64,000 bases of DNA from Selaginella moellendorffii (lineage: Eukaryota > Plantae > Lycopodiophyta). Below, piece after piece: positions 6 to 44,024 of this stretch. The position numbers and the translations under genes are program-made. Numbering within the stretch: the stretch's first letter is position 1; every line of letters starts with the position of its first letter. The notes under the pieces are model-generated. The model was given only the letters and a program-made list of their open reading frames with translations. It searched no databases and was not told where the DNA came from. Location of the stretch: positions 2,759,668 to 2,823,667 of the forward strand of contig NW_003314270.1 in NCBI RefSeq assembly GCF_000143415.4, in the 5' to 3' direction.

Positions 6-77
6 GGGGGTGTAGCTCAGATGGTAGAGCAATTGATTCACATGTGATAGGTAAGGGGATCGATGCCCTCACTTCCA
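6..77 (+). pseudogene. tRNA-Ala-derived pseudogene (anticodon now reads CAC)
   Basis: GGGGGTGTAGCTCAGATGGTAGAGC...GGGGATCGATGCCCTCACTTCCA is a plant tRNA-Ala body with G3:U70. The anticodon stem is mismatched (ATTGA/GTGAT) and the T-stem is one base short. A T-run (Pol III terminator) follows from 78. Confidence 0.8.
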
Positions 78-166: not shown

Positions 167-239
167 TGGAGGAGAGGGGCATCGATCCCCTCACCTATCG
201 CATGCAAAGCGATCGCTCTACCATCTGAGCTACGCCCAA
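167..239 (-). tRNA. tRNA-Ala(TGC), probably pseudogene (acceptor stem has 3 mismatches)
   Basis: Reverse complement: TTGGGCG TA GCTC AGATGGTA GAGC G ATCGC TT TGC AT GCGAT AGGTG AGGGG ATCGATG CCCCT CTCCTCC A. D, anticodon and T arms are intact; positions 1, 2 and 6 are unpaired. Confidence 0.8.
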
Positions 240-21868: not shown

Positions 21869-22027
21869 TGTGAAGTCAAAATATACAATTACAAAGCATA
21901 GTGGGATTTTAGTAATTATTGAATTGGTTTCAATATGGAACATTCACTCTTATATATAAATTAAGGTTTATAGGTTAATTGGTATGTATATTTTCTATAT
22001 TCCCTTTGCATATTTCAAACACTTACA
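21869..22027 (+). mobile_element. Degenerate solo LTR related to the LTR at 60432-60607
   Basis: TGTGA...TTACA ends. Shares agtgggatttt.gta, attggtttcaat and attttctatattcccttt with 60432-60607. Absent from duplication copy A. Confidence 0.75.
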
Positions 22028-22293
22028 GAGTATTTATAAAAAATTATAAAGCAAATTAACTACACTTAATTAGAAAACTTTAAATAACTGCTTTGAAAGA
22101 ATACTTATTACCATGAAGTCGTTAATTTTTCTCTGTACAATAAACATCAAACTCGTGAGTGTTACAAAGAGCCATCCCAAAATCGCGCTCGCGGATCAGG
22201 AGAAACGAAAAATGAAGAAAAAAAAGAAACTAGAAATCCCTTTTGGTGTGGTGTCAGTGGTGTTGGTTTGTTGTCTGTCACAGCCCCGATGGA

Positions 22294-22600
22294 TCAATCC
22301 TCCATGTTCCCCTGCAATATGGACAGCTCCCCTTCCTTCATAAGTATGTCCTCCTCCAGGAGATGAACTCTTCGCTTGAGCACTTCCACCTCGGCACTCA
22401 TTCGCAGGGCCTCTCGTCCCAATTGCTCCGCCTCGCTTTTGATCGAGTCCCTCTCCTTTCTCGTTCTCACCAGCTCCTCCTTGACTTTGCTCCAGTCCTG
22501 GACCCGATCGTTCAGTCCGCGTTGGAGCCAAGTTATCTTCTCCTCCTTCTCGGCAAGCTGTGCAAACATCACCCAAGTTCTACCATCAGAAAAGCAAATA

Positions 22601-22640
<40 letters not shown>

Positions 22641-25600
22641 TACCTTGTGCTCGAGGCTAATCACTCGCTGGGCGGCCTCGTCCACGAGTGCTTGCAGCTT
22701 CACAGCGTCCTTCTTCAGCACGAAACGATCCTCCACGGTCCTTTTCGTTTCAACGTCGTGGTGCTCGAGCTCCACTTCTCGCGCGCACAGCTTCTCCCTC
22801 AACAGCACGCAATGCATGTCTTGCACCTTTAGCTCCTCTTTGAGATCGTTAGATTGCTCTTTCATCTGGGCAAAGCACAATCACAGTTTGATTAGAACAA
22901 AGTAACCACGACAAAGCTTTTACCTGTTCCAGCTCGGTCTCGCTTTTCTGGCGAAGCTCCGATTCTTGTTTGAGCCTCGTTTGAAGGTCCACAATCTCCT
23001 TCTCCTTTGCATTGTACAGCCTGAACAGCTCTTCATTTCTACCCGTCAGTCGTTGGATCCGTGTCTCGAGCGTCTTTCTGGCCTCGGACATGTTTTGCTC
23101 CAGCCCCTGAATCGTCACATCCTTTTTCCCGCACTCCGTACGCGCTGCAAAAAGCTCTGATTCACGCTCCAGCAACTTGTCTTTCATCAATTCCAGTCGC
23201 TCGCTCATTTGGTTGAGCTGCTCGGCAGACACCTGCACATTGTCGGACTGATAAGGTAAGAGCAAAAAAGATAAAGCGCCCTCACCTCTAAACACTTTTG
23301 AACGTCGCACTCTGTGTCTTCATTCCCGTCCTCGCTTACCCTTTTCCTGAAGGCCGCCTGCTTGGCTACGATTCCCTGTAGGAGCCTGTTCGTCTTCACT
23401 ACAGCTTGTAACCGTGTTTCTAGCCATTTGAAATCTTTGTCTTTATCCTGTAGCTGCAGCTTCCGCTTCGCGATCTCGTCCTGTAAGCTTTTGACCTCCT
23501 CGTCGACATTTTTCTTACGCGATTCCATCTCGCGGATAGAGTCGGTTTTTGTCTTCTCCTCCCTCAATGCGGTGCTGAGCTTGATCGTGAGGATCGAGTT
23601 GTGTTCTTGCAGCTCATAAATCTGTGTTTTCAGCCTGTCTACCTCCGAGTGATATTCAAAGCCAGGCTTTACAGTGCCGTTGCTGCCATCCCTCTCTTCG
23701 ACCTTTGCTTTGTCCACGAGTTTCTTCAGCTCCCGCCTCACGGCTGTTGCTTCGCGGTTTGAAGCATCTAATTCGCGACGTAGGCCCTGTTCTATTGTAC
23801 TCAGTCTCACGAGCTCGTTTTGCAGCCTCACGACGGCTTTGTCTTTTTCCTGTGGCCTCGAATCTGTAACGTTATTGAGCCCATTGTAGAGACCTTGGAT
23901 GCTTTTTTCGTGGTCTGTACACAGCTGCTGTAGCCTGGCCACCAGACGACGTAGATCCGTATTCTCATCCTCCTTTTCTTGACAAGACTTTCTCAAGGAC
24001 GCAAGTTCATCTTCTGTATGCATGCTCTGCTTACGGGTGTTGACAGAGGATTCCCGTATCTCCAAAATAACTTTCTCTGCCTCGTCTAGCTTCTTCTTGT
24101 GTGTCGCAATCTGATCTTCATACTGCCTTATCTGTTCCCGCAGGCCTTTCTCCCTAGCAGCCATTGACGCTGTCTCCTTTTGCAAGCTTACATTATTCTC
24201 CGCAATGTCCCGGACTCTTCCCTTAAGCCTTGTCTCCTCCATCTGTGCCTTCTCCAGTCTCGCTATCCAATCTGCCTCCCTTCGCTGTAATTCCTCTTCC
24301 AATGAAGTCTGCTGGTCAGATTTTTCTCTTTCCGAGGTAACCGCGGCTAACTCAAGTCTTCTCTTCATGAGTGCCAATCCATCCTTGATGGTTACTTGCT
24401 CAAGAAGACGTTGCTTGGCTTCTGAAGCAGCCTCCAGCGCCAGCCTGAGCTTTTGCTCCAGCAACTCCCGCGCCCTGCTCTGCACGTCGGGAGTTTCCTG
24501 GACGCCATCAAAATCCGAGTCGTCACTTAAGTAGGAATCTGCCAGCTCTGCTTTCACGGCCTGGACTTGCTTCTCCGCTTCACTTGCACGTTCTTGAGCT
24601 ACGTAGTGCATGTTGTCAACTTGGTCCTCGTACTCCTTTAGTTTGTTATCTAAGTTCATTAGCTCACTGTCAGTTTTAAGGGCCTCCCGCCTGCCTAGTG
24701 GAAACATTTCCCTGGATCTGGAGTTCCTGAAGCTACCGTAGCTGAGGTATCGATTGTCGGAAAAATCCAGAATGATCTCGTTGGGATCAACCTCTGCTGC
24801 ACTCGATTCATTGAGATAACTTTTGAGAGCGCGGGTGGAATTGGAGTCCTTGTAAGGGCTGCTGTTAGCCACCCCACTGCTGCCTTCAGAAAAGCTAGCC
24901 GGCGCTCTCAAGTCCTTCTTCGAGCCACCGGTCCCCCGAATAGCCTTGGCCAGCTTCTCAGCGACAAGCCTGGCGCCTTTAGCCTTCCCAGGCGCCTTGT
25001 CATTGTCCCTACGAAACTTGTATGGAACAATGGCTTCGTCATACTCGACGATTGCTCGCCTCTCCCCGAACGAATTCGAGCCCGAAGTAGCTACTGACAA
25101 ATTCTCTGCCGAGTCTGTCCTACCATGACCTCGCGTTCTGCCAGGACTTAAGTGTGACACGAAGCTGGACAGCATTGCAAACGGTCCCTCTGCGGAAGGA
25201 TTTCCATCCTCAAACCTGTGCTGACTCGACTTTGCTTTGGAGTCTCCAGAAAATGGCATCCGCAGCCTGGGAGCGCTCTTAGTCCGTTTGGCATGCTGCC
25301 TTTCCTTGCCAAGTCCAGGGGGCCTGAAAATTCAAGCGAACAGTTCAGAGAACACGAAGAAGAATTTGTCTGTAAACCAAAACAAAGAAACTCACGGTTG
25401 TAGTACTGTGTCCATGCTGGGCCTGTATCTTGACTCGGCTGTGCTCCTTGTTTCATCCGTCAAGGCACGCATCCTATGGGCCGACTGGAAGTAAGCCGTG
25501 GGAGAGCAAGCCCGCACGCTGAGAACTTGCTTCTCCTCGCAATCGTCCTCGCAATACGGGCCACTGCGAGAAGCCGGCGACGCCAGGTCCATCTCTATAC

Positions 25601-25925
25601 TCCTTCCTGGATGCGCTAGCCTTCTCGCCGCTGCCAGAGCCGCCTTTTCCTCCTTACTTGGTGGAGTAGCGTCCCACATTTTCCCCTCTTTTGGGAGAGT
25701 GTGCTCCCTCCTGCTGACGGCCCTGGTTTCTTCCCCGCGAGGAGTCGTGCTGCGACCCCATTTGAAAGGAGATCTCGAGCGAGCTGGGGATTTCTGGCGA
25801 GCGGCGGGCGCTGTGACGCATTCCTTGTCCTGCGTCAGGGTGCTTTGGCTGGAGACGTCCTTGAGAGGGGAGGGAGATTCGCCGGACGATGCCGGGGAGA
25901 GGATGGAGGGAAAAATCCGCCTCAT
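22294..25925 (-). CDS. Long coiled-coil protein, At3g55060/At2g39300-like, multi-exon
   Basis: MRRIFPS start. Conserved ELQRREADW...EETRLKGRVRDIAENNVSLQKE and C-terminal LEEDILMKEGELSILQ. The intron at ~25325-25395 joins the two large ORFs in frame. Confidence 0.8.
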
Positions 25926-26468
25926 CTCATCGACTTCCAGCACGGCAGCACCAGCATTGATCCTGTTTCGCCCAAAGGGAAAATTTTTCAAAGCTCTTGA
26001 TCACTCCACATTGATGAGAACTCTCGCTTACCTCGAAAAGGAGAGTCGAGTGATCCTGCGCCTTTCTCCAGTCAACCTCGCAGCCGGCGCTTTCGCAGCG
26101 CTCAATCACCGCCAGTGCCGTAATTGCTGAAGAGGACCGCCCGCTCCATTCGATTCCACTTCGTCCCCGCGGCACAGGACCGACGACGCTGCCGAAATTT
26201 CGATCCACAGGCGCGTCTTGCCCGCATCCAAGCGATATTTCGCTCGAAAGGCCTCGAGAATCGCTGAGAATCTCCGAGAAGCAGCAGCTTTCCCCCCGAG
26301 ACTCCCAGGATCAATCAAAAGCGCTTGAAACAGCGCTCGCGCCTGGCGTCGCGGCACCTGGTGGAGTGAAGCTCACAGAGAACCGCCGAAAACCTAAAGG
26401 AGCAGCGGCAGCGCCTAGGCTGAAGTAAACAAGCACAAAGAAGAAAGGAACCTTGCTACTTATTTATC

Positions 26469-26654
26469 GTTTAGTATAGTAGAACGATAATAAGGCAATA
26501 GAAAATTATAGCGTTGGTAGATGTGTCTCATGGGCATTACCATGCCCATCCAGCACGCTCCACTGAACACGTCATGCATAGAGCGTCCCAAGAGCGTCCC
26601 ATGCCCATGCATACGAATTGGCGCCAATGGGGCCATTGCTATTCTATACTAAAC
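26469..26654. mobile_element. Possible Tourist-like MITE
   Basis: 11-bp inverted termini GTTTAGTATAG / CTATACTAAAC, nearby TTA/TAA and palindromic internal motifs. Confidence 0.4.
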
Positions 26655-27377
26655 AGCGTAAGATGCGCGCGGCAAAAATGGTTTTGAAATTACCATGACC
26701 GCGGAATTAAGGAGCAATAGTGGGGGGCGTGGTAGGAATTTTGGGCCTGTCCGTACATCCCATTTCATGCCACCTGGCAGCGAAAGCAAGCAAACGTCCT
26801 TGTTCCTGGAGATATGAGGAAGATTCCCTCTTGTCTAACCTCGGATGCCTTAATTCGTCCACCGTTTGGCACCTAGAAAATTCCTATCAACTGTTGTTAG
26901 TCGTGAATCGTGGTGGTGGAAGGAGGAACCCTAGAAATTTCTCAATGGAGCGAGAATGGGTGATGTTTTCGGTGCGTCGTTACTCAAACTCTTTCCACCT
27001 CGTGGTGTGTGGCGGCATTAACAAAGGATTCCACGAAGAACAGATCGACTCGTATGAAAACTAAATGCAAAGGTTGGGAAAACATGGGATTTCATTAAGA
27101 TTTCATGACCTTTTTAGCGGCTTAGAACATTCGGTACGTGGCGCGGATCTGTGCACACATGATCGTTCGTTCCCGTGTTCTTGTTCTACGTTGTTTTTAA
27201 ATGGTTAGCGTTAGATTATGATTGACCTGGCTCAAGATTGTTTGCCCACGCTCTTTTCCTCTCCCAGGTTTTCTTGTTTGTTTTTCATCTCGAATGTATG
27301 TATGCTGCCCAAGGTTCATCATTGGGAAACTGGCAAAAGGAAAAACCCATGGAGCAAACAAGCAAACTTCCTCTCAC

Positions 27378-27400
27378 TGTGTGTGTGTGTGTGTGTGTGT
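27378..27400. repeat. (TG)n microsatellite
   Basis: Direct reading. Confidence 0.95.
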
Positions 27401-29100
27401 CAGGGGGGTTGAACAAGACACACACAGGCTTCACGCATGCTTCCCAACCAAACCAACACAAAGGACTCCCTCTCACTCTCTGGAGACGGAAAAGGCTGCA
27501 AAGGGTCAGCTAGGCAGCCAGGAACAAAAGCAAGCTTTTTTGTGAAATCTGGTGCTGCCAGAGAGGCCAGCCATCACCACAATCCGGTTGTTGCTTGCCA
27601 GCATTCTCGCAAATCCAGCCCGTTTAGCCGATCCAAATCGAGTCAATCCTCCAGAAACTATGACATTGCTTATTATGGTTTGCAGTTTTGGGCCACTACT
27701 CCTCTTGAGTGCTCAAATCTGAGATCTTGAGCTCCTGAGAGGATTCATCCTAAACTAAGAACTTTTCCCTTCTCTCACCTCCCTTTCCAGAGCAGAGGTT
27801 GGTACAAGCTTCCTTTGAGGAATAGTGCAAACCAACCTGGCATGCTGATCTGGTTGGGGCATTTTTATTTCTATGCTTTCTTTATGGTTATTTTTTACCT
27901 CTTTTTTCTTCAAGCTTTGAAGCTAAAAAGTGGTGTTTGGCATGTGAGGTTGATTCCCTTGAAAGAAAGGGCAAGCAGCAATGACAACAATGCAGCACAC
28001 ACCCACACACATACACTCACTCACTTCCCTTTACAATCCAGCATTTGTGCTGGATTGGGTAGCAATTGGAATGCATTTGGGTTGGTCCCCTCTCTCTGCT
28101 TTTGCCCTCTATAACTTAGAGAACAAAACACTTTTCCCTTGGAAAGAGGTGGAAGCTTTTGCAGGTGTAGTGTGTACCACAGGTAAGCAGGCAGCTCCAC
28201 CACCTGAAGCCCACTATCATTGCTTATGAGTGAAATGGAAATAATCATACACTCTCACAGCTTCACCAGGAGTTGTAAGCCTCACTCTCAGTGTTGGTCA
28301 AGAGAAATCACCCACCCAGCCTTGGATTCCTTTGAAGCAAGGCTAAAGCTTTTTGTTTATTACTTTTACTGTACAGGGCCCCGTGACCACTGTTCGTAAA
28401 AAACAGAAGTTACCAGGTACAATCATTCAGGTTCTCCAGGAAACCGTTTTCAGCAAATGATAGTGCAAATCAGAGCTGGTAAACTGCGTCAACTTGTGCT
28501 CGATCGCAAATGGAATCTAGCAGTTTGCATGCAATTTGCTATAGACAATGGCATTTGCACTTTCTCCCGTAATCTTCTTAAGATCGTCTTCAAAGAAAAA
28601 AAATGAAACAAGGATGCATGGTCCGCTCTTTGTGTGTGACGCCACCTTTTATAGGCGTTACATAAGCAAAACAAAGGAGGCCTCTCATTCCATCGATGGT
28701 TCACGCAGAATGACTGGACGATGAGACCTCGCTCGTACTCTACGACACGCGCCAAAGCGTAGCGAGCAAACAAACAAAACAAACAAACAAACAAGGAGAA
28801 GGGAAGCTCAGTGTGGCTGCAAGGGCGAAAGCGAGAGCAGAGCAGACCTGACTGTGAACAGCGACTCTCACTGAAGTTGACCCTGTGATGAACCCACTCA
28901 AGCTTCCCTGCTCTTTTATATCTTTTTTTTTAGTTTGATTTTCGTCAGAAATTCTGCATGGTCCTAGTACCGAAATCACTGTTTTGCACAAGTATGTCTG
29001 TACAAAAACTTCCACTTTTCAGTGGTTATACAGACAAATGGATCTCTAACAAATATCCCATCTCGGGCTAAACGACGCGTCAGTTTGAGGGTTTTAGAGC

Positions 29101-30496
29101 ATGAAGAACAGCTCGTCCTGGATCATCGGAGCGCTGCTGCTGGTATCGCTTGCCAAAGCTACTTCAGGTAAGCTTGTTTGTGAGCTATCTCTTGCTCAAA
29201 ACATTTGTTCTAGTGGAGCCTGGGTTTACTGTCAAGACCTTGTTTGATCTCGGCAAGCACTCGGCAAATGCCTTTGCCTTGTATCCAGACCCGCGGAACA
29301 AGTTTGTGTTGGCGCTTGATTCCAGTGGCAATCGCATATGGAAGCTGAGACTGCCACTCTCGCAGAGTAAGCACTAGAAGCTTTTCTTATGCTTTGTTTT
29401 GTGGCTTCAAAGCTTAAGAATTTTTTTTTCCTCTAGACAGCAGCTTGGAAGCTTTTGCCGGTTCATTCGTGGGGGAGTCCGGCTATGTCGACGGCCCCGC
29501 GGCAAAGTCACTTTTTAATCGCCCACAAAGCCTTGCTATTTGCGACAATGGCGCGGTCTTTGTGGCGGATACGAGGAACTTGGCTATACGCAAAATCAGC
29601 AAGGATGGCGAAGGTAGTTTCGTTTCCTCTTTTAAAAATCTCTAGAACATTTTTTCTAGTTCCAACAGTGACCACCATTGCCGGAGGTAGCTCTCGAAAG
29701 CCAGGCTTTGCCGACGGCCCCGGAGACACAGCTCGTTTCTCAAGCGAGTTTAGCTTGGCGTGTTCTTGTGGCTCCTTACTCATAGCCGATCGCGGGAACC
29801 GGCTGATTCGCGAGATACAAATCGATGATCCAAAGTCGTGTGATTCAAGCGATTCAGCCGTTTCAGGTGACTTCTCATCCTTTACCTGGATTTTTTTCTT
29901 TCGATTGGATTTAAAACTCCTGCTTTTTGTTGATTTCATGATCAGGATCACAAAAATGGGCTTTAATTCCCGTAGTGCTGCTTGGCGTCTGTCTGGGGAT
30001 GCCTCTGGGAGCTTTTATAATCTGGAAGATACTTGATCAGCGGTGCCGGCAAGTAAGTTTCACGAGCAAAGCTGGTGACTCTTATGAAAATATTTCTAGG
30101 CAGGCGATCAGCTGGGAAACACTGAAAGATTGCTGGCGGGCGTTCCGGAGGACGATGATCTGCAAGTTCGGCAGCAGAAGCGAACTTGCTAGCGCCGTCT
30201 TTAGTCTTTTCCTTCTTGTATGTCATCAGGCACAGCTCCTCGCGTCTGTCTTCTTTGGTGTTGCACACGAAGTAAAAACGAAGCCAACTGCGCCTGTCAA
30301 ACAAGATCAAGACCTCCACTCTCTCCTTGGAAACACGAAAGATGAGCCTCCAGACCTCATTGATTTCATGGACTTGGAATCTTCTGTTGCTCCTTCTCGC
30401 CCTCTTTCTTTTCCGGATTTGAGGAATTTGACTATGGAGCTCGAGTGTTTGGAGAAGTTCCAGCAGGAATTCAAGGACAAGCGCAAGCACAGCTAA
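29101..30496 (+). CDS. NHL-repeat protein with signal peptide and TM segment (copy 1, apparently intact)
   Basis: MKNSSSWIIGALLL signal; GESGYVDGP...FNRPQSLAI...VFVADTRNLAIRKI; VTTIAGG...GFADGPG..ARFS; LLIADRGNRLIREI; TM segment; late DLIDF motif. Confidence 0.85.
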
Positions 30497-30560
30497 GAAT
30501 GTGCTCACACAAGCTTTGTTTTTCCACTCTTCTTGAATAGTCCATTGTTTTACAAATAGG

Positions 30561-30690
30561 TTGACGCTCATGTTCCGGCGGAAGGCGTTCCTCCGGCGAG
30601 GAGATGGACGAGCTCGAGTTCCAACGATCTGGTGACCGAGTACCAGCAGTACCGGGACGCTTCCATGACGACGATGACTTTGGGGAGGAT
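30561..30690 (+). pseudogene. Beta-tubulin C-terminal fragment (copy 1)
   Basis: Successive frames give [11 protein letters not shown] / GEEMDELEF / NDLVTEYQQYRDAS / DDDDFGED, versus beta-tubulin [44 protein letters not shown]. Confidence 0.85.
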
Positions 30691-30814
30691 CCAACTCGCC
30701 TCGCAATCCACAGCGTAAAAACCATTCTCTTTTTTCACAAAGGCAAAAGTATTACTATTTTTTTCCAAGTCAAGGGTTAGGTTATACTTTCTCGCTTGGA
30801 TTTTTCTATTCGAG

Positions 30815-31630
30815 ATGTCGGAACGCGCGGTTTCGTCAGGTATGGATGCTTCTCTCCATCAAGAAGCTATGGTCTCTCGTGATCATGGGCCTCCAACGCT
30901 TGGCCGCCGAGCTCCAGCGCCCTGGCATGGCGGCCATCACCGAGCTTCACACCCGCGAGCTCCAGCTCCAGCGCATCGAGCAGCGCATGGACACCACCGT
31001 CCTCGAGCATCTCATGGAGGCCACGAGCCAGCGCCAGCTTTAGCTCCAGTTCCAGCTCCGGCTCCAGCGCCAGCTGCTTTCGTTCATGCTCGCGGCCACC
31101 ACCCTGGTGATCGAGCTCCAGCGCCTCGCCACCACGATCCAGCTCCAGCAGCAGCGGTGTACTATCATCATCACGGTGATGGAGCTCCTCTGGTTGTTCA
31201 CCACCATCACCATGGTCACCATCATGGAGGCCACCACCATCACCATGGTCACCATCATGGAGGCCGCCACCACCACCACCACCACCACCACCACCGTCGC
31301 GACGGTCACAACGCAGCGATGGCCACACCGACACCCGCGGCAGTGGTTACAGTGGCTCGGAGGACGCCCTGGTCGCTGCTCCAGCTTCTTCTCTGGGTTT
31401 TGGTTGCGATCTTGGTGCTGCTTGCGTGCTGTTTGCTAGTGCGATGGATGTTATCTCGAAGGAAACAGCGCAGGAATGCGATCTTTCAGGACCCTCAGTG
31501 GCGGATCGAAGTGACGAATCCTCTGGCAGTTGTGGTGGACGATTCTCTGACTGAGAAGAAAGAGCCCGAGTGGAGGATTAAAGTGCTAAACGCACAGGAG
31601 GAAGACGATTCTCTGACTATGAGCTTGTGA
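30815..31630 (+). CDS. His-rich, Ala-Pro-rich single-pass membrane protein (copy 1)
   Basis: 271-aa ORF with (AP)n, poly-His, TM LLLWVLVAILVLLACCLLV, basic stop-transfer RRKQRR and a duplicated WRI.V.N....DDSLT tail motif. Frame is preserved in all three copies. Confidence 0.65.
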   Translation: MSERAVSSGMDASLHQEAMVSRDHGPPTLGRRAPAPWHGGHHRASHPRAPAPAHRAAHGHHRPRASHGGHEPAPALAPVPAPAPAPAAFVHARGHHPGDRAPAPRHHDPAPAAAVYYHHHGDGAPLVVHHHHHGHHHGGHHHHHGHHHGGRHHHHHHHHHRRDGHNAAMATPTPAAVVTVARRTPWSLLQLLLWVLVAILVLLACCLLVRWMLSRRKQRRNAIFQDPQWRIEVTNPLAVVVDDSLTEKKEPEWRIKVLNAQEEDDSLTMSL

Positions 31631-33375
31631 AAGTACGGTGCTACCAGCATAGCGAGTGCTCGAGAGGTTTAAGCGGCGGGATTAGTGTGGTCTAAACGGC
31701 ACCTGACGATGCCTTGCTCTCATGAGGTACCGAGTCTGTGATCTGGACGCTCAAACGATTGATACTGCAGTGGAGGGCCTGTTCCAGTGTTTGGAGTGAA
31801 GAAGACACAGAGAGCTTCGTCGATCTGCAAAGGTTATATTCGTCGCGACAATCTCTATGCAAGGTGTCGAAGCCTCGTCAAGTTTTTAAACGAATACCCC
31901 GGAAGCAACATCGTGGACTATCTTGATTGCCGGCTATGCTCAGCACAACGAACCGGGATGCTGATAAACTATCGTGGCAGAACTGAAGGCTTGGGCAGCT
32001 CTGGCAATTGGGAAGGTAATTCACTTGACTATCTCCAGATATAGAGACGAAGTCATTGCGTCCGTGGCCAACTCAAAGCGAGCATGTAGTACTGTGAAGG
32101 ACTGCCGAGTTATGGTCACCTGCGGCTTTGTTCTGGAAGTCTTAAAACCGGACGGGATTGCTTTCACTTCATCCTCACTGAGTGTAGCGATGCTGACTTG
32201 GTCGACACAGCAACCCAGGCAATGAGCTGATCGTAGGTAACTCCAGATCTGGAGCACTTTCACTGTATGGTGGTGAGGCTGTCGAGATGGCGAAAACGAT
32301 ATGCTTTATCGACTTTTATTTATTGATAAAGAAGAATGTGTGGAATGTTTGAAGGAGATTAAGTAGTTGATTTCACCGTATCTTTTATTAGCTAATAATT
32401 TTATTATTTTGGCAAAAAAATAAAAAAATTTAATGGAGAGGCTATAACTTAAATAGTATGGAAAGGTGGTTTTAAAGAATTATAACTTTGTTTCTCTTTC
32501 TCTTTTCTGTCGACATTTTTGGTTCTGAATCCAAGCAATTCATGGATTCAGAATGCATACTCTAACGTTTGAATTTGAACACATACTTGACCAATTTGGT
32601 TATAAATCTGGATTTGAATCACAAATTCTCCATGCTCTTCGTGATCAAACCTTGGTTGTTCATTTTGCCTTTATCTTATGGTGATTTACTATAGGATAAT
32701 CACGAAATGGAACTTAAACCTTTCATGTGGCTCCATTTTTTTTGACATCCAACACTAACATCCGCAAAATGGTAAAAACCACATATGCTACATTTGGTAT
32801 CAGAGAATGAGTTTCGGCAAATACTATCTAATGAGATTGAGTAATTAGTCTCATTGCATATGCAGAGATGAAAATGATGATCTGAGTGGGTACACATTTG
32901 AGTGCAATCGTTCCTTGAGTATGGTTTTGGTTACCTTTTTATACCATACTATGTGAATTTGCTCTTGGGCTCATAAGATGGATTGAGGAGTTCCGTTTGC
33001 ACAAGTTTGCGCTTGGGCTCATGAGTGAGGCACATTAGCAACTCATGGTTACACCTTGAGTTGGCAAGATTAATATTATTCTATTGGTGATTCCATGAGT
33101 TGTTCCATGTATCGTCGGTGAAAGTAAACCTCCCATGGGTTTGCTATGAGTGGCAAATAAGCTGGTCTATAGCTGTTTAGCATGACACTAGTAGATCCTT
33201 CCTATACATAATTATAAGTGGATCAATCAAGATTGTAGGGGTTAGTCTATTGGTTTAAGTAATCATTGTTGCGCTCTCTCATAAACTTTTCTTGGATTGA
33301 ACTGAAGGCAGTGCAGACGCAAGCTTGAGGTTTTGTCAAAGATGAGACCGAAAATAGAGTTATTAAAGACAAAAG

Positions 33376-33569
33376 TGTAAGCAACCAAAGAGAACGACTT
33401 GAGAGACGGTCCATGGGATTCAAATATAGAGGGAAAGGGCCCATAAATAAGAGTGCACCCCTTTTCCAATTGGTTAAGGGTCTTGGGATATTTGGGGTTA
33501 AATGTCCTTGGGTTTGAATGGTACTGGTCCCGGGTGACCTCCCGGGAAGTCTAAATTTAGGAGCTTACA
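33376..33569 (+). mobile_element. 194-bp solo LTR carrying a 5S rRNA internal-control-region segment (Cassandra-like)
   Basis: TGTAAGC...GCTTACA perfect 7-bp inverted ends with AAAG direct repeats on both sides. 33497-33551 aligns to plant 5S rRNA +51 to +104 (about 41/55 by eye, including GGGTGACCTCCcGGGAAGTC). Confidence 0.75.
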
Positions 33570-34613
33570 AAAGGATCAAACACGTAAATTATCTTCTCTT
33601 CTTTGAGATATAATTTGTAACAAAGAGTGACTCATTGCTCATGTTCACATCATGCAATCAAGAATCCCTACATTGATGCATGTTGGAAATAATAGTCTTA
33701 CAAGTAGTGAGTTGTGAGATGAATAGCGGTGAAACATTAAACCATTTTGTTTAGGCTTGCTATTGAAAACTTAGGTTACAATGCTCAATTCTTTTCTGGG
33801 GAACCTTGCTATTGCCCCTTGAGTAGCTCGGTGTTGGATTAGTTTTGAATTTGGTCGAAAAGAGAGTGGTATGAACTTGTCCATGTTATGAATAAAAGTT
33901 AGTGGTGTTAAGTGTTGTAAATCTTTATCGGTGGGGTGTGGCATTTATGTTGCATTTTATCAAATCGAGTTGGCACTTGATAGTCATATAAACCTTTATA
34001 GTAATGACATGGGAGTTTCTCATGGTGTTGCTCAATTGATGATCAAGTCATTGTGATTTTTATATCATATCTATGTGATAATGAGTAATACGTTTACGAA
34101 GTTGCTTGGTTAAACGATGATCAACCCCAAAATGGTTGATGGTGAGGCTAGTCTACTTACATGTAGTAACATTGTAGTAGCTTTGATTGAATTCTCGAAG
34201 ATGATCCATTATGCTAAGTTTAAGTTGATTTTTTGTTTCCTTAAGTTTGTCTATTGAGGTGTTGGAAAGGGTTATAGCATTCACTTGTTATGGCTTGTTG
34301 ATTATCTATTAGCACTTAAAGTAGATTGTTGGATGGAGAAGATGTGTAGTTAGGGCATTAACATCATTAGCACTTGTGTTAATGGAAATGGCATTATTAT
34401 TTCAAGTGATAAGGAATTCTTCTTAGAACTTGATTTTCCATACCATTTTTTTTTTTAGTGTTTTGAGCTTCGCATTGGATCTTGAAGGTGGTTGAAAAAA
34501 AGTGTTAAGTGTAATGTGGATGTCCGAAGATGTGGTCTTCGTGATCAAACCTTGGATGTTCATTTTGCATTTTGCAAATATCGGTATTAGATGTAAAAAA
34601 AAATAGGCAAAGA

Positions 34614-35012
34614 TGTAGCGCATGTGATCATAGGATGAGATTTGGATATACTGTCACCGTGAATCCTAGGAACCTTGCGGGATAAATGGGGATAAAATAG
34701 CCACTAAGGGCTCTCTCATCAAGCAATTTCCCCTTTTCTAATTGGCTTAAAGGGAGAGAGATAAGGTGTGCTACAGTTATTCCCCTTGGCTCAGTAGGGG
34801 TTGTTAGTCAATAGTCAATGAGAACATTGACATCTCTGAAGGGGGGGTGAGTGTAACACATGTGATCATGGGATAAGATTTGGATATACTATCACTGTAG
34901 ATCCTTGAAACCTTGTGGGATAAATGGGGATAAAATAGCCATAAGGGCTCTCTCATCAAGCAATTGCCCCTTTTCCAGTTGGCTTAAGGGGAGAGAGATA
35001 AGGTGTGCTATA
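34614..35012 (+). mobile_element. TRIM with internal deletion (LTR 34614-34775, LTR 34852-35012)
   Basis: Two ~160-bp direct repeats that are the reverse complement of the LTRs at 52160-54204. PPT gaagggggggtgag precedes the second LTR. The PBS region is deleted. Confidence 0.85.
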
Positions 35013-35017
35013 ATTAG

Positions 35018-38000
35018 GTGATATTGACAATCAGTTCGGACTGGTTGGAGGACATTCGGGCTTCATATGGAAGTGATTCATTGGCGAAGGCAATCTTATG
35101 CCGTGCGGGGTTGTTAAAGCAGAGCCTTGGTAGCAAAGTAGCAAAAGTTGCTAGTTGTACTAATGCAAAGCTTCACTTCTTAGTTCGGGATGGGCTTATA
35201 TTCTATAAGCAAAAAAGATTGTATCTTCCCTCTAAGGATCTTCAGCAGTTATTTTTGTGGGAACATCATGATGTTCTAGCAACAGGACATGGTGGACAGC
35301 GAAAGACTCTAGCTTCGTTGAAAAAGGGATTTTTCTAGTCTGGTTGGAAGGTGATGTAGCGAATTATGTCCGTTCCTGCCCTATATGCCAGCAATGTAAG
35401 CACAGAACTGAGAAGTAAGCTGGAAAGTTGCGATGCATTCCAGCACCGGCATGGCCATTTCAAAGTGTGACACTTGATTTTGTCACTTGCTTGCCGAAGT
35501 CTAAGGGTTATGATACTTTGATGGTGGTTGTGGATCGGTTGTCGAAGATTGCACACTTCATTCCAACTGTGGGAACAGTAAATGTGAAACAAGCAGCAAA
35601 GCTCTTTTTCCATGAAGTAGTGCGGGTTTGTGGTCTTCCTGAAGAGATAATCTCGGATAGAGATTCGAGGTTTACAGGGAAGTTTTGGGGCACACTATTC
35701 CAGTTGTTTGGTACCATGTTAAAATTTAGTATGGTTTATCATCCTCAAACAGATGGGCAGACTGAACGCATGAATGCTCAAGTTGAGGATTATCTACAGT
35801 ACTATGTTGCGGCGGACCAACGCGACTGGGTTGAGCATTTAGATACAACAGAAATTTGTTATAACAACACATTTCACAACGCTATAGGCTGTTCTCCATG
35901 GGAAATGCTGCAAAGGAATGCTCATGGGGTCCCTCAACAGATTGTTGTACCGAAACCAATGACCAAAATGTTGGTCCTAGCCGTTGAGACTTATGCGGAG
36001 CAGCTACGCCAAGGTTGGTCTAGAGCTACTGAGGCAATGGGCAAAGCTCAGGATAGGTGTCGACATGATAAGGACCAGCATCGTCGGGATGTATCTTATC
36101 AAGTGGGAGATCAGGTGTGGTTATCTTCCCGGAACTTGCACATTAAGGGTTCTTTATCTCAGAAGCTCTTGCCGAGATATGTTGGACCCTATCGGGTGTT
36201 AAAACGAATTGGTGATGTATCCTATCGATTGGATCTTCTTGTGGAGATGTCCAATATTCATAATGTATTTCATGCCAATCTATTGGCTCCTTACACTATG
36301 GATATTGAGCGCCACGGGGAAATTCCTCCACTGCCAACAGTTGTGGATGGTGAACCTGAATACAAAGTTGAACGAATTCTGGCATGTCATCGGAAACGTG
36401 GTGGTCGTGTAAAGGAATATCTAGTTAAGTGGAAAGGTTACCCGACTTGTGAATCAACTTGGGAACCTCTTTGTAATCTTACCCATACTCGTGAGCTTAT
36501 CACGGAGTATAAGAGTAATAAAGACTAGCTTTTGTAAAAATCTTGTAATAAATCTTGCAAATCAATAAAGAATATATTTCTATAAACCAAAGTGTCGTTT
36601 CTCTCGTTCGATAGTACTTGGGTCAATTTTGGCAGGCTAACTTCGGCACTTTGGTGCATGGGTTCAATCCATAACCATGGGGATAACTATTATAGACTGA
36701 TCACAAGTCCCCGCCTCTCTCTCGATAACTCATTTTCGAAAAAGGGCGTGGTCGTGTAAACAACTTAATCTGCCAATTTATAATAGTTGTTTAAATCTTC
36801 CCGATTTCTTGCTTAGGGGAAGTTGGGCCTCTGGCCTTCTCCCTATGTCCTTGCGGGCAGGGATGTATCATTCCTTTGTAAGCCGAGTGGTATTCGGAGT
36901 AGCAAGGGTGGCTAACTCTGTTAGTCATTTCCTTGTCGGTGACAGCCGGAGGGTGTCTGAGTCTTAACGTTTTTGAACGTAGAGGAGAGGTCGTTCCATA
37001 ACTCATTTAAGTCAATGTGTTTCCCACATAGTGTGCTTTCCGTTAACTTTCGGAGTTGTTTCCTTGACGGTTTGCTAGACTTGGGTATGCATTGACGAGG
37101 ACGTCGATCTTCCCCAAGGGGGGAAGAGTGTCGCAAATGTGACTTCGGGTATCGAAAGATACTTGTTGACTAGTCCTTACGGGCACTCTTTCTTTACTGC
37201 CACGATGGTAGGAGGTCGGTACTGCTGGTCCCTTTTATGGTCTCCACCCAAGCTAGTTGAGAAACTGGTCATCGTGTGTGCACTTGACCAAATGAGCATA
37301 AGGACGGAATTCCTACATGCTATTTGTCAAGCATACTTGACCTGGTTAGAGAAACTCATTCGTTGACTTGCACTTGCTAGTGTTGGGAACCCCCGCGATA
37401 TTGAGACTAGTCCCTCAATATTCGCTAGATGATAGCTTACCATGTCTGCCAAACACCCTCGCTATCATGTCCTTTGTGTTAGTCTCATTTTGGTTCCAAG
37501 TGCTATTTATGGAAAGTGTCTAGATTAGCTCATTTGGCATATCTACGGAATGTAGAGATCGGCCTGAACACAATAGTGTTTGTCCTGTGCCCAAATTTGC
37601 AATCTAGTGCCATTCCATATTTAGTAAGTTTTGGACTTGTCCCAGAGACTAACTTCTAGTACTAAGGGAGGCTTGGGGTGAAAGCCCAAAGCGTGTGTCC
37701 CACAGGGGGAGGGGGGGGGGGGGTTCCAAATGTATAGTAGGGATAGTGGTTGGAATGCATGTTCGACCACTTGAGACATTAGTTTGGCTCCCATTGGGCT
37801 GTGTCGCTCCTTGTTCTGCGTCCGGCTTGGGTCTAAGCCCAAGCTCCATGCTGCTCTAGTCAATGGAGTACCCTCCTCCTCGCGTTAGGCCACCGGTATG
37901 CCAAAATTGTGCCAGACTCCGTCTAACACCATTTTGCGTGCAGGTGCTGGATACAGGGAGCTAGTGCTCGTGGGATTGTACCGGACCCTCATTTCGTACC

Positions 38001-38042: not shown

Positions 38043-39790
38043 AAAGATGTCTGATGTTTAGCATGCTATTGGATCATGAGAATTTGTGTTAAGGTGAACC
38101 TATGTGAAGTTGTTAATAGAAGGAAGTTGGTTGAGTCTTGAAAGTTTTCATTCCTACACTAAGAGTCATTTTTTTTAGGATGGAAAATTTTCTACAAATT
38201 TTCTTAAACTTTTCCAATAGCCAATCTGGATCTGGATCTAGATCGGCAATTGGAAAAGTCTAAAAATATTTGTGGAAAATTTTCCATCCTAAAAAAGGAA
38301 TAACTCTTCACCTTAACACAAATTCTTGTGATCTAATAGCATATTAAGCATTGAACATCTTTGCCTATTTTTTTTTAGATCCAACATCGACATCCACAAA
38401 ATGCAAAATAAACATCCAAGGCTTGATCACGAAGAGCATGGAGAATTTGTGATTCAGATCCAGATTCAGAACCAAATTAGTCGAGTATGTGTTCAAATTC
38501 AAACGCATACTCAAATTCATGCATACTCGGATTCAGATCTAGATGAAAACTTTATTTTTGGACTCAACTTGACTAAATATTAAACTTGCTGTTTTTAATC
38601 TAATTTAAAAAACATTTATGAAAGAATACAATAATGACCATTTGAACCTCGATCCATTTATAATCATACATAGTAAGGATCCACTATTGTCGTATTAAAC
38701 AGTTATGAACCAATTTATTTACCACCCATAGCAAGCCTATAGGAAATTTATTTTTACCTATGATACTATAGTAATAACTCATCCAATAATCTTGTCAACT
38801 TATTAAATTGCTAATGTGTCTAGTACATCTCAATATGTACAAGCAAAACTTTATACAATATGGTAGATGACTTCTTGAGCAATCCAAATTCAAAAGTTTA
38901 CATTTGAGGATCATATGCTTAAATTGATATTGTGCATATCATAAGACTTAATCAAGAGAGAATACCTAATTTGAAGCAAGTAATATTGAGTGAATTTTGT
39001 AGTATTTAAACTCAAAAATGCTTAGCCCTAAATATTCTAAGATTCTAAATCTCTTTATATTGAAACCTTAATGAGATTTCTGAAATTGTTCTCTTTAATT
39101 ATTTACAACTAAATTTTTTTATCGTTTATATATAAATAAACAAATGAGATAATATTTCAATAGACTTTATCACAAAATATTTTAAGGAAATAATGCTATC
39201 TAGATTGTTATGGATTAGTTAACGAAGAGCTTCTCAATGAAGATGACAATTTAAACTTTTAAACTGATTATGGAATGATTAGGATCTGCAAATGTAAACC
39301 TATTTCACAAAGACCTTGGCAAATATATAACATTATAAGCAAATGTGTTACACAGACATGCTTGGCAGCAGTCGTGCCATTCCCATCACAATCTCTTAGC
39401 ATGAAGGCTGAATGCGTTCAGCCCTGAAATTGAACGTTCCATGCTTGAACGTCTGTGATATTTTGGGATGAAATCATTGCAATGATCTGATATTCTCTCA
39501 CAGTAGAATTAGTGCTCGATATGGATAATCAAACTGGCAACATTTTCCAAAGAACATGAGATAATCCTAAAGCTTATATAGCATACCTTTCTCGATGGAT
39601 CTTAGTTGTTCTTATCCATTGTTCATGAATGGTCCTAGTACCAAAATCCATGTTTTCCACTGCCTTGCTTGATGATAACTCTTTGTAGCTTGCGAATGGC
39701 GTGAACACACAGTTCAATTATGATTCATGGGTAGTTAACCACATAGGAAATGGATCTTCTAACCATCTCAGGCAGGTTTTAGAGCACGAT

Positions 39791-41265
39791 ATGCAGAACA
39801 GCTCGGCTTGGATCATCGGAGCGCTGCTGCTCGCCTCGCTTGCTAATGACGCTAGTGAGTTTAACTCTCTTGCTTGTTCTGGGTTTACTGTCAAGACCTT
39901 GTTTGATCTCGACAAGCACTCGGTAAATGCCCTTGGCTTGTATATGGACCTGCGGAACAAGATTGTGTTGGCGCTCGATTCTAGTGGCAATCGTATATGG
40001 AAGCTGAGACTGCCACTCTCGCACGCTGCTGACGATCCTCATACCCTTGGGGAGCGTCTGGAAGAGGCGCCACTCGCTGCACGGGGAATTCTCGACTGGA
40101 GTAAGCACTAGAGGCTTTTCTTATAAAGCGTAAGAGTTTTTTTTTCCTCTAGACAGCAGCTTGGAAGCTTTTGCCGGTTCATTCGTGGGGGAGTCCGGCT
40201 ATGTCGACGGCCCCGCGGTAAAGTCACTTTTTAATCGCCCACAAACCTTGCTATTTGCGACAATGGCGCGGTCTTTGTGGCGGATACGAGGAACTTGGCT
40301 ATACGCAAAATCAGCAAGGATGGCGAAGGTAGTTTCGTTTTCTCTTTTAAAAATCTCTAGAACATTTTTTCTAGTTCCAACAGTGACCACCATTGCCGGA
40401 GGTAGCTCTCGAAAGCCAGGGTTTGCCGACGGCCCCGGAGACACAGCTCGTTTCTCAAGCGAGTTTAGCTTGGCGTGTTCTTGTGGCTCCTTACTCATAG
40501 CCGATCGCGGGAACCGGCTGATTCGCGAGATACAAATCGATGATCCAAAGTCGCGTGATTCAAGCGATTCAGCCGTTTCAGGTGACTTCTCATCCTTTAC
40601 CAGGATTTTTTTCTTTCGATTGGATTTAAAACTCCTGCTTTTTGTTGATTTCATGATCAGGACCACAAAAATGGGCTTTAATTCCCGTAGTGCTGCTTGG
40701 CATCTGTCTGGAGATGCCTCTGGGAGCTTTTATAATCTGGAAGATACTTGATCAGCGGTGCCGGCAAGTAAGTTTCACGAGCAAAGCTGGTGACTCTTAT
40801 GAAAATATTTCTAGGCAGGCGATCAGCTGGGAAACACTGAAAGATTGCTGGCGGGCGTTCCGGAGGACGATGATCTGCAAGTTCGGCAGCAGAAGCGAAC
40901 TTGCTAGCGCCGTCTTTAGTCTTTTCCTGCTTGTATGTCATCAGGCACAGCTCCTCGCGTCTGTCTTCTTTGGTGTTGCACACGAAGTAAAAACGAAGCC
41001 AACTGCGCCTGTCAAACAAGATCAAGACCTCCACTCTCTCCTTGGAAACACGAAAGATGAGCCTCGAGACCTCATTGATTTCATGGAACTCTCCCAACTT
41101 GGAATCTTCTGTTGCTCCTTCTCGCCCTCTTCCTTTTCCGGATTCGAGGAATTTGACTATGGAGCTCGAGTGTTTGGAGAAGTTCCAGCAGGAATTCAAG
41201 GACAAGCTCAAGCACAGCTAAGAATGTGCTCACACAAGCTTTGTTTTTCCACTCTTCTTGAATAG
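39791..41265 (+). pseudogene. NHL-repeat gene copy 2, frameshifted
   Basis: 1-bp deletion near 40246 (cacaaaccttg vs cacaaagccttg) and a 10-bp indel near 41088 relative to copy 1. Confidence 0.8.
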
Positions 41266-41285
41266 TCCATTGTTTTACAAGTAGG

Positions 41286-41415
41286 TTGACGCTCATGTTC
41301 TGGCGGAAGGCGTTCCTCCGGCGAGGAGATGGACGAGCTCGAGTTCCAACGATCTGGTGACCGATTACCAGCAGTACCGGGACGCTTCCATGACGACGAT
41401 GACTTTGGGGAGGAT
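41286..41415 (+). pseudogene. Beta-tubulin C-terminal fragment (copy 2)
   Basis: Near-identical to 30561-30690. Confidence 0.8.
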
Positions 41416-41539
41416 CCAACTCGCCGCGCAATCCACAGCGTGAAAACCATTCTCTTTTTTCACAAAGGCAAAAGTATTACTATTTTTTTCCAAGTCAAGG
41501 GTTAGGTTATATTTTCTCGCTTGGATTTTTCTATTCGAG

Positions 41540-42373
41540 ATGTCGGAACGCGCGGTTTCGTCAGGTATGGATGCTTCTCTCCATCAAGAAGCTATGGTCT
41601 CTCGTGATCATGAGCCTCCAACGCTTGGCCGCCGAGCTCCAGCGCCCTGGCATGGCGGCCATCACCGAGCTTCACACCCGCGAGCTCCAGCTCCAGCTCC
41701 AGCGCATCGAGCAGCGCATGGACACCACCGTCCTCGAGCATCTCATGGAGGCCACGAGCCAGCGCCAGCTTTAGCTCCAGTTCTTCAAGGTGGCGCTCCA
41801 GTTCCAGCTCCGGCTCCAGCGCCAGCTGCTTTCGTTCATGCTCGAGGCCACCACCCTGGTGATCGAGCTCCAGCGCCTCGCCACCACGATCCAGCTCCAG
41901 CAGCAGCGGTGTACCATCATCATCACGGTGATGGAGCTCCTCTGGTTGTTCACCACCATCACCATGGTCACCATCATGGAGGCCACCACCATCACCATGG
42001 TCACCATCATGGAGGCCGCCACCACCACCACCACCACCACCATCGTCGCGACGGTCACAACGCAGCGATGGCCACACCGACACCCGCGGCAGTGGTTACA
42101 GTGGCTCGGAGGACGCCCTGGTCGCTGCTCCCGCTTCTTCTCTGGGTTTTGGTTGCGATCTTGGTGCTGCTTGCGTGCTGTTTGCTAGTGCGATGGATGT
42201 TATCTCGAAGGAAACAGCGCAGGAATGCGATCTTTCAGGACCCTCAGTGGCGGATCGAAGTGACGAATCCTCTGGCAGTTGTGGTGGACGATTCTCTGAC
42301 TGAGAAGAAAGAGTGGAGGATTAAAGTGCTAAACGCACAGGAGGAAGACGATTCTCTGACTATGAGATTGTGA
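41540..42373 (+). CDS. His/Ala-Pro-rich single-pass membrane protein (copy 2)
   Basis: 277-aa ORF differing from copy 1 by substitutions and in-frame indels only. Confidence 0.65.
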   Translation: MSERAVSSGMDASLHQEAMVSRDHEPPTLGRRAPAPWHGGHHRASHPRAPAPAPAHRAAHGHHRPRASHGGHEPAPALAPVLQGGAPVPAPAPAPAAFVHARGHHPGDRAPAPRHHDPAPAAAVYHHHHGDGAPLVVHHHHHGHHHGGHHHHHGHHHGGRHHHHHHHHRRDGHNAAMATPTPAAVVTVARRTPWSLLPLLLWVLVAILVLLACCLLVRWMLSRRKQRRNAIFQDPQWRIEVTNPLAVVVDDSLTEKKEWRIKVLNAQEEDDSLTMRL

Positions 42374-44024
42374 ATGTACGGTGCTACCAGCATAGCGAGT
42401 GCTCGAGAGGTTTAAGCGGCGGAATTAGTGTGGTCTCTGGCTTCGCTCTAAACGGCACCAACTGACGATGCCTTGCTCTCATGAAGTACCGAGGCCGCTC
42501 AAACGGTTGATACTGCATTGGAGGGCCTGTTCCAGTGTTTGAAGTGAAGAAGACACAGAGAGCTTGGTCGATCTGCAAAGGTTATATTCGTCGCGAAAAT
42601 CTCTATGCAAGGTGTTGAAGCCTCGTCAAGTTTTTAAACGAATACCCCCGAAGCAACATTGTGGACTATCTTGATTGCCGGCTATCACAAGGAACCGGAC
42701 GAGCTGTTTCAACGGATGCTGATAAACTTTCGTGGCAGAACTGAAGGCTTGGGCAGCTCTGGCAATTGGGAAGGTAATTCACTTGACTATCTCCAGATAT
42801 AGAGACGAAGTCATTGCGTCCGTGGCCAACTCAAAGCGAGAGTATCACTGGTGCTGAGCACGTAGTACTGTGAAGGACTGCCGAGTTATGGTCACTTGCG
42901 GCTTTGTTCTGGAAGTCTTAAAACCGGACGGGATTGCTTTCACTTCATCCTCACTGAGTGTAGCGATGCTGGCTTGGTCGACACAGCAACCCAGGCAATG
43001 AGCTGATCGTAGGTAACTCCAGATCTGGAGCACTTTCACTGTATGGTGGTGAGGCTGTCGAGATGGCGAAAACGATATGCTTTATCGACTTTTATTTATT
43101 GATAAAGAAGAATGTGTGGAATGTTTGAAGGAGATTAAGTAGTTGATTTCACCGTATCTTTTATTAGCTAATAATTTTATTATTTTGGCAAAAAAATAAA
43201 AAAATTTAACGGGAGAGGCTATAACTTAAATAGTATGGAAAGGTGGTTTTAAATAATTATAAGGAATAACTTTGTTTCTCTTTGTTTCTCTTTTCTGTCA
43301 ACATTTTTGGTTCTGAAACACAAAGTTGTCTGAGTGTGTGCCAGTGGTCTAATGTGGATAGCAAGCTCAACAACTTTACAATAGACTAGGCATGTCAAAG
43401 AGAGAGTTAGCATTTGCTAGTTTTTAACCTTGAGTTAGGTTTGGAGCAACAAGAAATAGCAACTTAACTAATAAAAGATGACAAAATCAACTATAAATCC
43501 ACTTAATCTCCTTCAAACATTATTCTACCTTTTTAATAAATAAAAGTAGAAATAAAATTTAATGCATAAAATAATCAGCATAACCCAAGCTTTTCGCATC
43601 CTCTAGAAAGTTCAAAATTCAGTTTGTGTCAATACTTTCTTGGCTCCCAAAACCAATCCATTATTGAGTAATGCCAAGAAAAATCCTTACAATCATTTCT
43701 GAGAGTATACTCACAACAGCCCTTCGTTCCACCAGCTTTTGAGGACTTGCAGTGATGAGGGTCATACTTCTTTAGGAATTCATCCAGGTCTGGAACATCA
43801 TCTACCCCAATATTTTGCCCAAAATGCATAATAATTTTACTTTTTTTGACAATACTTTATATGCTAGAAGTTTAATAGGAGGAGAGAGAAAAATTAATGG
43901 AAAGGCTATTTTTAAAATAGTATGGTTAGAAGAGCATAGTGAAGATGGGATACCAAAGTGGTTATAAAAATTATAAGAAATAAAGGAGTGTTGCTTTGGC
44001 ATTTCGCTCTGTTTCAAGCCGAAC

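Follow-up and report, generated by a model that had tools for sequence, protein, structure and literature searches.

The 194-bp unit at positions 33376–33569 of the plus strand of the analysed Selaginella moellendorffii DNA is probably the solo LTR of a miniature gene-less LTR retrotransposon (TRIM), and this LTR carries a copy of the 5S rRNA internal control region. Positions refer to the window, the whole stretch of 64,000 nucleotides that was analysed. The unit is most likely a member of the Cassandra-type (TRIMp3) design in S. moellendorffii, as judged from its arrangement. To our knowledge, Cassandra is the only experimentally validated Pol III-driven LTR retrotransposon. The literature found places Cassandra in ferns, monocots, and dicots, and the open literature that was searched (Repbase and subscription journals were outside its scope) contained no report linking it to Selaginella or lycophytes. 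Gao et al. 2016 (PMC4717578) annotated eight subfamilies of TRIM from S. moellendorffii (SmoRetroS...); according to this paper, Cassandra is the only TRIM family in which 5S sequences were found, and those of lycophytes are described as lacking them. From the same species, Kojima 2024 (PMC10886601) lists only Helenus-1_SMo, which is of the tRNA type.

A sequence-only reading of the window had proposed a solo LTR built on a backbone that is shared with a neighbouring TRIM. The solo LTR part of this proposal stands, carried by the discrete insertion, the LTR-type TG...CA ends, and the sense-oriented 5S control region, whereas the shared backbone is not supported. The features of the unit and its flanks are listed in Table 1.

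Table 1. Positions of the 5S-promoter unit, its parts, and related features in the window. Box positions follow the vertebrate numbering of the control region, and box identities are given relative to the 5S sequence 5S_L007.
Feature	Position	Strand	Basis
Probable solo LTR (194 bp) of a 5S-promoter, Cassandra-type miniature LTR retrotransposon	33376–33569	+	TG...CA ends; single copy; paralog without the unit
5′ terminal inverted repeat TGTAAGC	33376–33382	+	Reverse complement of 33563–33569
3′ terminal inverted repeat GCTTACA	33563–33569	+	Direct reading
Putative target-site duplication, left copy AAAG (5-nt: AAAAG)	33372–33375	.	Direct reading; A-rich context
Putative target-site duplication, right copy AAAG (5-nt: AAAGG)	33570–33573	.	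Direct reading
Host repeat, left flank of the LTR	33057–33365	+	Paralog 46353–46622 on the minus strand
Right flank, paralog homology resumes right after the LTR	33572–33620	+	Score 39 versus 26.2 ± 4.0 for shuffles
Predicted Pol III start (position 1 of the 5S frame)	33447	+	Alignment register to 5S genes
23-nt quasi-palindromic motif, common to tRNA-box TRIM LTRs	33458–33480	+	BLAST; core counts
Only T4 run in the unit; putative leaky Pol III terminator defining a short R	33462–33465	+	+16 to +19 of the 5S frame
A-box equivalent (5S 50–64) GGTTAAATGTCCTTG	33496–33510	+	10/15; 2 mismatches to the Cassandra query RGTTAAGYRHGY (PMC7215508)
5S rRNA-derived module (internal control region, 5S 51–104)	33497–33551	+	43/55 versus plant 5S genes
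Intermediate-element equivalent (5S 67–72) TTTGAA	33513–33518	+	3/6
C-box equivalent (5S 80–97) GGTCCCGGGTGACCTCCCG	33526–33544	+	15/18 and a 1-nt insertion; 4 mismatches to RRRATRGGTRACY
Copies of the motif in TRIM LTRs	34730–34753, 34967–34990, 52180–52203, 52682–52703, 53186–53205, 54065–54088

The 5S rRNA-derived module

Plant 5S references were obtained by scanning metagenome contigs with the 20-mer GGGTGACCTCCYGGGAAGTC and checking the matching loci with Rfam. Ten of the fetched loci contain 54 Rfam-confirmed 5S genes, the best of which scores 112 bits. The set used for alignment consists of 93 distinct plant-type 5S-gene-like sequences from metagenome contigs, Rfam-confirmed with scores of 70–112 bits. 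In the best local alignment to these 93 sequences, LTR positions 33497–33551 correspond to 5S positions 51–104, with 43 of the 55 positions identical and one 1-nt insertion. The alignment has a score of 29, compared with 8.2 ± 1.2 for shuffled sequences (maximum of 15 in 1000 shuffles, z about 17). Removal of the anchoring 20-mer leaves a score of 15, compared with 7.7 ± 1.2 for shuffles. The C-variant of the 20-mer, GGGTGACCTCCCGGGAAGTC, has an exact match in the unit and makes up the core of a Beta vulgaris 5S primer from the literature (PMC5672272). The coordinates given by the alignment are the same as those at which the A box, intermediate element, and C box of 5S had been recognised in the sequence-only reading.

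The Rfam 5S model (RF00001), proposed earlier as a check of the module, assigns the unit 15.7 bits, which is below the gathering score of 38, and its alignment includes a 40-to-8-nt internal gap. The E-value of the RF00001 match is 2 for the search of 551 nt with 4227 families, and about 5e-4 for the 5S family alone. With only 15.7 bits from RF00001, the module is a fragment of the promoter rather than a gene. Identity between the unit and the 5′ half of 5S is about 30%, the level expected by chance. None of the 120 loci carrying 5S sequences exhibits 5S similarity to the unit upstream of about 33490, and none of the metagenome 5S loci is similar to the LTR upstream of its position ~110. Therefore, the module represents the promoter part alone, and the unit, which is devoid of the first 50 nt of 5S, cannot encode 5S rRNA. 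The 5S part is not followed by a terminator at its 3′ end, and the predicted RNA of positions 33447–33569 does not fold better than shuffled sequences (z −0.7).

The module is oriented in the sense direction, is located in the 3′ third of the LTR (63–91% of its length), and stops 18 nt short of the LTR end. The intermediate element is poorly conserved in this copy, since only three of its six positions are identical. The sequences GGTTAAGGGTCTTGGG and GGTTAAATGTCCTTGGG, positioned 24 nt apart within 33472–33519, might represent a tandem duplication of the A-box region of 5S. The putative duplicate at 33472–33487, which overlaps the 3′ half of the 23-nt motif, is identical at 14 of 17 positions and is not significant (p≈0.1).

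Predicted transcription start and T-run

The register of the alignment to 5S genes places the predicted Pol III start where it had been proposed from the letters of the window, and a scan for T-runs agrees with the proposed position of the T4 relative to this start (Table 1). The T4 is the sole run of at least four T in the unit and is located 30 nt upstream of the A box. In printed Cassandra sequences, for example that of Saruma henryi (dt599514), a run of four to five T is positioned 36–37 nt upstream of box A (PMC7215508 supplement). Another printed Cassandra with such a T-run is a tandem array that has the PBS TGGTATCAGAGC (PMC7215508 supplement). The Cassandra T-runs are located at about +9 to +13 of the 5S frame, compared with +16 to +19 in the 194-bp unit, and a T-run of this kind is absent at that place in the real 5S genes of the fetched set. 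The T-run layout of the unit is of the same kind as that of published angiosperm Cassandra. According to the summary of Kalendar et al. 2008 given by Kojima 2024 (PMC10886601), the 5S part of the 5′ LTR is where Cassandra RNA begins and that of the 3′ LTR is where it finishes, which results in an 18-bp R (terminal duplication).

By analogy with Cassandra, TFIIIA and TFIIIC bound to the internal promoter of an intact element would position Pol III near 33447, at a distance of about 50 nt upstream from the A box. The polymerase would then pass the weak T4 of the 5′ LTR, cross the PBS and the internal domain, and stop at the equivalent T4 of the 3′ LTR, so that an R repeat of about 16–19 nt would be available for strand transfer. 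An autonomous element would provide reverse transcription and integration in trans. The solo LTR would be the remnant left after recombination of the two LTRs of such an element. To judge from its sequence, the present copy is an inert relic, and it has drifted in the A box, in the intermediate element, and in the C box, which has also gained an insertion.

Relationship to Cassandra

The feature that defines Cassandra, a 5S control region within the LTR, is present in the unit as a diverged copy. The layout of the unit also agrees with a Pol III T-run that would give rise to a short R. The LTR is short and contains the A box, intermediate element, and C box of 5S in the sense orientation, as do the LTRs of Cassandra from ferns and angiosperms (Kalendar et al. 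2008; PMC7215508; PMC10853983). Furthermore, the T-run is within the first ~20 nt of the 5S frame, and the LTR has TG...CA ends with a TGTAA start, as in Cassandra. The 5S part is close to the 3′ end of the LTR, similar to that of fern Cassandra, in which the PBS is 8 nt from the 5S part (PMC7215508), compared with 18 nt to the LTR end here. In contrast, the 194-bp LTR is shorter than those of Cassandra, which measure about 240–350 bp, and its host is a lycophyte. Only 5S positions 51–104 are recognisable in the Selaginella LTR; in being limited to the promoter part, the module resembles the ~70-bp "core" that all Cassandras have in common (PMC10853983). The strict IUPAC Cassandra query (PMC7215508), RGTTAAGYRHGY and RRRATRGGTRACY separated by 15–25 nt, does not match the unit, which has two and four mismatches to the two halves and a 19-nt spacer; this query is operational and based on euphyllophytes, and is not a biological definition.

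We see an even chance that lycophytes acquired the 5S promoter by an independent capture, in which case the unit would not descend from euphyllophyte Cassandra and would still be the solo LTR of a 5S-promoter TRIM. The restriction of the 5S similarity to the promoter part (51–104), as in the Ajax elements, is consistent with such a capture, and so is the position of the 5S part within the LTR, which is roughly in the middle in the 81 Cassandras surveyed (PMC10853983). The 5S variant of the unit (ACTGG, CCTCCCGGG) best fits one subgroup of the fetched 5S genes, which points to a local 5S type, and Kojima 2024 argues that captures of this kind recur (PMC10886601). Additionally, a 51-nt Nephrolepis Cassandra LTR fragment, rebuilt from two published primers, has no significant similarity to the unit. 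However, across plants the identity among Cassandra LTRs is only about 44%, and the missing similarity outside the 5S part therefore says little. The T-run just after the predicted start, which is common to the unit and Cassandra, and the 5S part abutting the LTR end, as in fern Cassandra, argue for descent from Cassandra.

A 5S-promoter LTR in Selaginella would mean either that this design dates back further, to the base of vascular plants, or that it has arisen again independently in plants. Both meanings bear on how often LTR elements capture small-RNA promoters, which is the subject of Kojima's "TRIMp3" idea. One solo LTR adds little alone, and its value lies in the dated, bounded insertion and in the motif that it has in common with the tRNA-box TRIM.

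The motif shared with the tRNA-box TRIM

The segment CCCCTTTTCCAATTGGTTAAGGG of the unit (33458–33480) aligns to the motif CCCCTTTTCCAGTTGGCTTAAGGG of the TRIM LTRs with 22 identical positions, one mismatch, and one gap (BLAST E 0.003 in the window). The motif core CCTTTTCCARTTGG occurs seven times in the window, in the unit and in six TRIM LTRs, compared with 0.16 occurrences expected, and an A variant of the core is present in one TRIM copy. The near-identity of the two motifs, remarked on in the sequence-only reading, is thus real and non-random. The match has the same orientation as the 5S module and the polarity of the TRIM LTRs; the motif is quasi-palindromic and therefore speaks only weakly for the polarity of the LTR.

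The same reading had interpreted the motif as a sign of two related lineages on a shared backbone, an interpretation that the comparison of the LTRs does not support. When the motif was masked and the terminal bases were fixed, the left part of the 5S LTR aligned to the tRNA-box TRIM LTR with a z of 1.3, and 226 of 2000 shuffles were at least as good. The right parts of the same two LTRs gave a z of 0.6 relative to shuffles. Since there is no detectable similarity beyond the motif and generic TG/CA ends, a shared backbone is unsupported. Ends of the TGTAA.../...CTACA type and a tRNA-iMet PBS are also found in a third adjacent element (PBS-like TGGTATCAGAGA at 32795), and these features are therefore not specific to the pair formed by the 5S LTR and the TRIM. 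The shared 23-nt block could originate from recombination of co-packaged RNAs, from strongly diverged common descent, or from a convergent functional element. An origin of the motif from a tRNA D-arm/A-box was considered and rejected, because the Rfam tRNA model had no hit at E≤10 on the TRIM or on the 5S LTR.

It is conceivable, and in our estimate improbable, that the motif, composed of the T4 and the quasi-palindrome, is a portable cassette that was exchanged by template switching between 5S-promoter and tRNA-promoter TRIMs sharing one Selaginella helper, and that the Cassandra-type design existed at or before the lycophyte-euphyllophyte split. The cassette would act as a leaky terminator for Pol III and define the R region, and perhaps also act as an A-box-like or helper-recognition element. 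Such an exchange would mean that Pol III-driven mini-retrotransposons swap promoter modules around a common core.

The tRNA-box TRIM contains the heptamer CAGTTGG twice (52640–52720 on the minus strand and equivalents), once inside the 23-nt motif and once at the junction of the LTR and the PBS. The distance to the B box GGTTCGATTC is ~52 nt for the copy in the motif, which is a more tRNA-like A–B spacing than the ~18 nt of the junction copy. The plus-strand tRNA-box TRIM at 34614–35016 has kept two LTRs and the PPT-proximal internal part, and its PBS and B-box part are missing, whereas the minus-strand array at 52160–54204 retains the PBS and the B-box part. In the metagenome contig L067, a 5S fragment that lacks the initial ~40 nt of 5S is located at 146–240 on the minus strand. 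The sequence CCTTTTCCAATTGG occurs exactly at 2547–2560 on the other strand (plus) of this contig, ~2.4 kb from the 5S fragment; its flanks are unrelated to the Selaginella motif, and the match is probably a coincidence.

Borders of the insertion

The unit begins with TGTAAGCAAC, preceded by ATTAAAGACAAAAG, and finishes with GGAGCTTACA, followed by AAAGGATCAAAC. Its ends form a perfect 7-nt terminal inverted repeat, with TG at the start and CA at the finish, and it is flanked on both sides by an exact 4-nt AAAG; the 5-nt reading of this duplication matches at four of five positions (Table 1). A 5-nt target-site duplication is typical of plant TRIMs. Because of the A-rich context, the AAAG duplication alone is weak evidence. 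Direct reading bears out the unit and flanks proposed in the sequence-only reading, and the insertion is backed by comparison with an inverted paralog of the surrounding repeat.

The left flank (33057–33365) belongs to another repeat, of which the inverted paralog at 46353–46622 is ~77% identical. The homology to the paralog reaches 33375, the last base before the unit, and resumes at ~33572 with a score that exceeds that of shuffles (Table 1). When the unit is deleted in silico, the joined flanks align to the paralog across the insertion site. The uninterrupted paralog presents an empty-site-like pattern in a sister copy, which supports a discrete insertion, and by this comparison the borders of the unit coincide with the TG...CA ends, give or take a few bases. 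A stretch of about 9 nt in the paralog aligns to either flank, and the target-site duplication could thus be read as a longer, imperfect one of 9–11 nt.

Palindromic ends alone do not give LTR polarity, which speaks against the solo LTR. The right flank, AAAGGATCAAAC, is not a PBS, and other elements account for the PBS matches found in the window. A MITE (non-autonomous DNA transposon), or a different kind of short repeat that is bounded by 7-bp terminal inverted repeats and holds a 5S fragment by chance, would agree with the perfect 7-nt terminal inverted repeat, the short direct repeat, and the small size of the unit, as well as with a locus at which no PBS or PPT is visible. We consider this very unlikely, because the TG...CA ends together with the TGTAA start are an LTR signature, and because the ends resemble those of the neighbouring TRIM LTRs (TGTAAC/TGTAGC...CTACA, followed by a tRNA-iMet PBS). 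Furthermore, a 4–5-bp duplication suits LTR integrases better than the common MITE superfamilies, which counts against a MITE. It is likewise very unlikely that the unit represents a SINE derived from 5S (SINE3-like) or a decayed 5S pseudogene that is a mere passenger in an unrelated repeat, as could be read from its 5S promoter fragment and from the Rfam alignment of 33478–33566 as a 5S with a 32-nt internal deletion, because it has no A-rich or LINE-like tail, has its 5S part at the 3′ end and not at the head, has insertion borders that coincide with the TG...CA ends, and matches the 5′ half of 5S at chance level only.

Within the window, the 194-bp unit is present in a single copy. The LTR-specific 23-mer had no matches in the metagenome contigs. 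Among the metagenome loci matching the 5S 20-mer, which are 5S genes and fragments only, none has a tRNA-iMet PBS within 400 nt. A protein search with the translated LTR (a 63-aa open frame on the minus strand) was blank.

Genomic neighbourhood

An ORF of 684 aa located 8 kb upstream encodes a protein 100% identical to one of S. moellendorffii, and scaffold GL377574.1 of GCA_000143415.2 is 100% identical to positions 22000–35925 of the window. The window is therefore nuclear DNA of this spikemoss and corresponds roughly to GL377574.1:2759668–2823667. The scaffold of the other haplotype, GL377699.1, is without the whole segment 32530–43455. The 10.9-kb structural difference between the window and this scaffold has direct repeats at its borders, and the missing segment holds the 5S LTR and a TRIM-chromovirus chimera. 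A repeat of ~3.4 kb is present in two copies in the window (29117–32529 and 39776–43317) and in one copy in GL377699.1, which misses the ~7 kb between them. The chromovirus integrase ORF of the window matched no Selaginella proteins. The annotated genes near the unit are all spliced.

The segment 32783–32806, which reads ...GCTACA, TT, and TGGTATCAGAGA, resembles an LTR 3′ end with a PBS of the tRNA-iMet type behind it. It is probably part of the element into which the 194-bp unit inserted, the sister copy of which is at 46353–46622. At the beginning of the window, an inverted pair of tRNA-like sequences is located at 6–77 (plus strand) and 167–237 (minus strand), with Rfam tRNA scores of 37.2 and 38.5 bits, respectively, which reach the gathering score, and with no ARAGORN call. 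The tRNA-like sequence at 6–77 is followed by a T8 run. The pair could be diverged tRNA genes or the heads of tRNA-derived repeats.

Comparison with known systems

The unit is homologous to positions 51–104 of the 5S rRNA gene (RF00001), including a 20-nt exact stretch. It differs from the gene in its sub-threshold RF00001 score, in a region corresponding to the first 50 nt that is unrelated, and in having no 3′ terminator, and thus it is not a gene. Like the unit, SINE3 is a mobile element that uses the 5S internal promoter. However, in SINE3 the 5S part forms the head at the 5′ end, the tail is LINE-related, and TG...CA ends are lacking, which is not the organization found in the unit. The Ajax TRIMs of nemerteans (PMC10886601) are similar to the Selaginella unit in that their LTRs are 154–163 bp long and contain the promoter part of 5S alone (box A, intermediate element, and box C), with no 5S-like fold. 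They differ in their animal host and in a PBS for tRNA-Leu, and their origin is almost certainly independent.

The tRNA-box TRIM (52160–54204 and 34614–35016) and Helenus-1_SMo come from the same genome as the 5S LTR and resemble it in their miniature LTR design and in having candidate Pol III promoter boxes. The tRNA-box TRIM additionally has the 23-nt motif and ends of the TGTAA.../...ACA type. Both differ from the 5S LTR in that their promoter module is of the tRNA type and not of the 5S type, and the body of the TRIM LTR is unalignable to the 5S LTR outside the motif. Helenus-1_SMo, with a 120-bp LTR and an 85-bp internal part, represents yet another family. Since S. moellendorffii also has tRNA-promoter TRIMs, it is a natural place for a side-by-side comparison of the promoter types.
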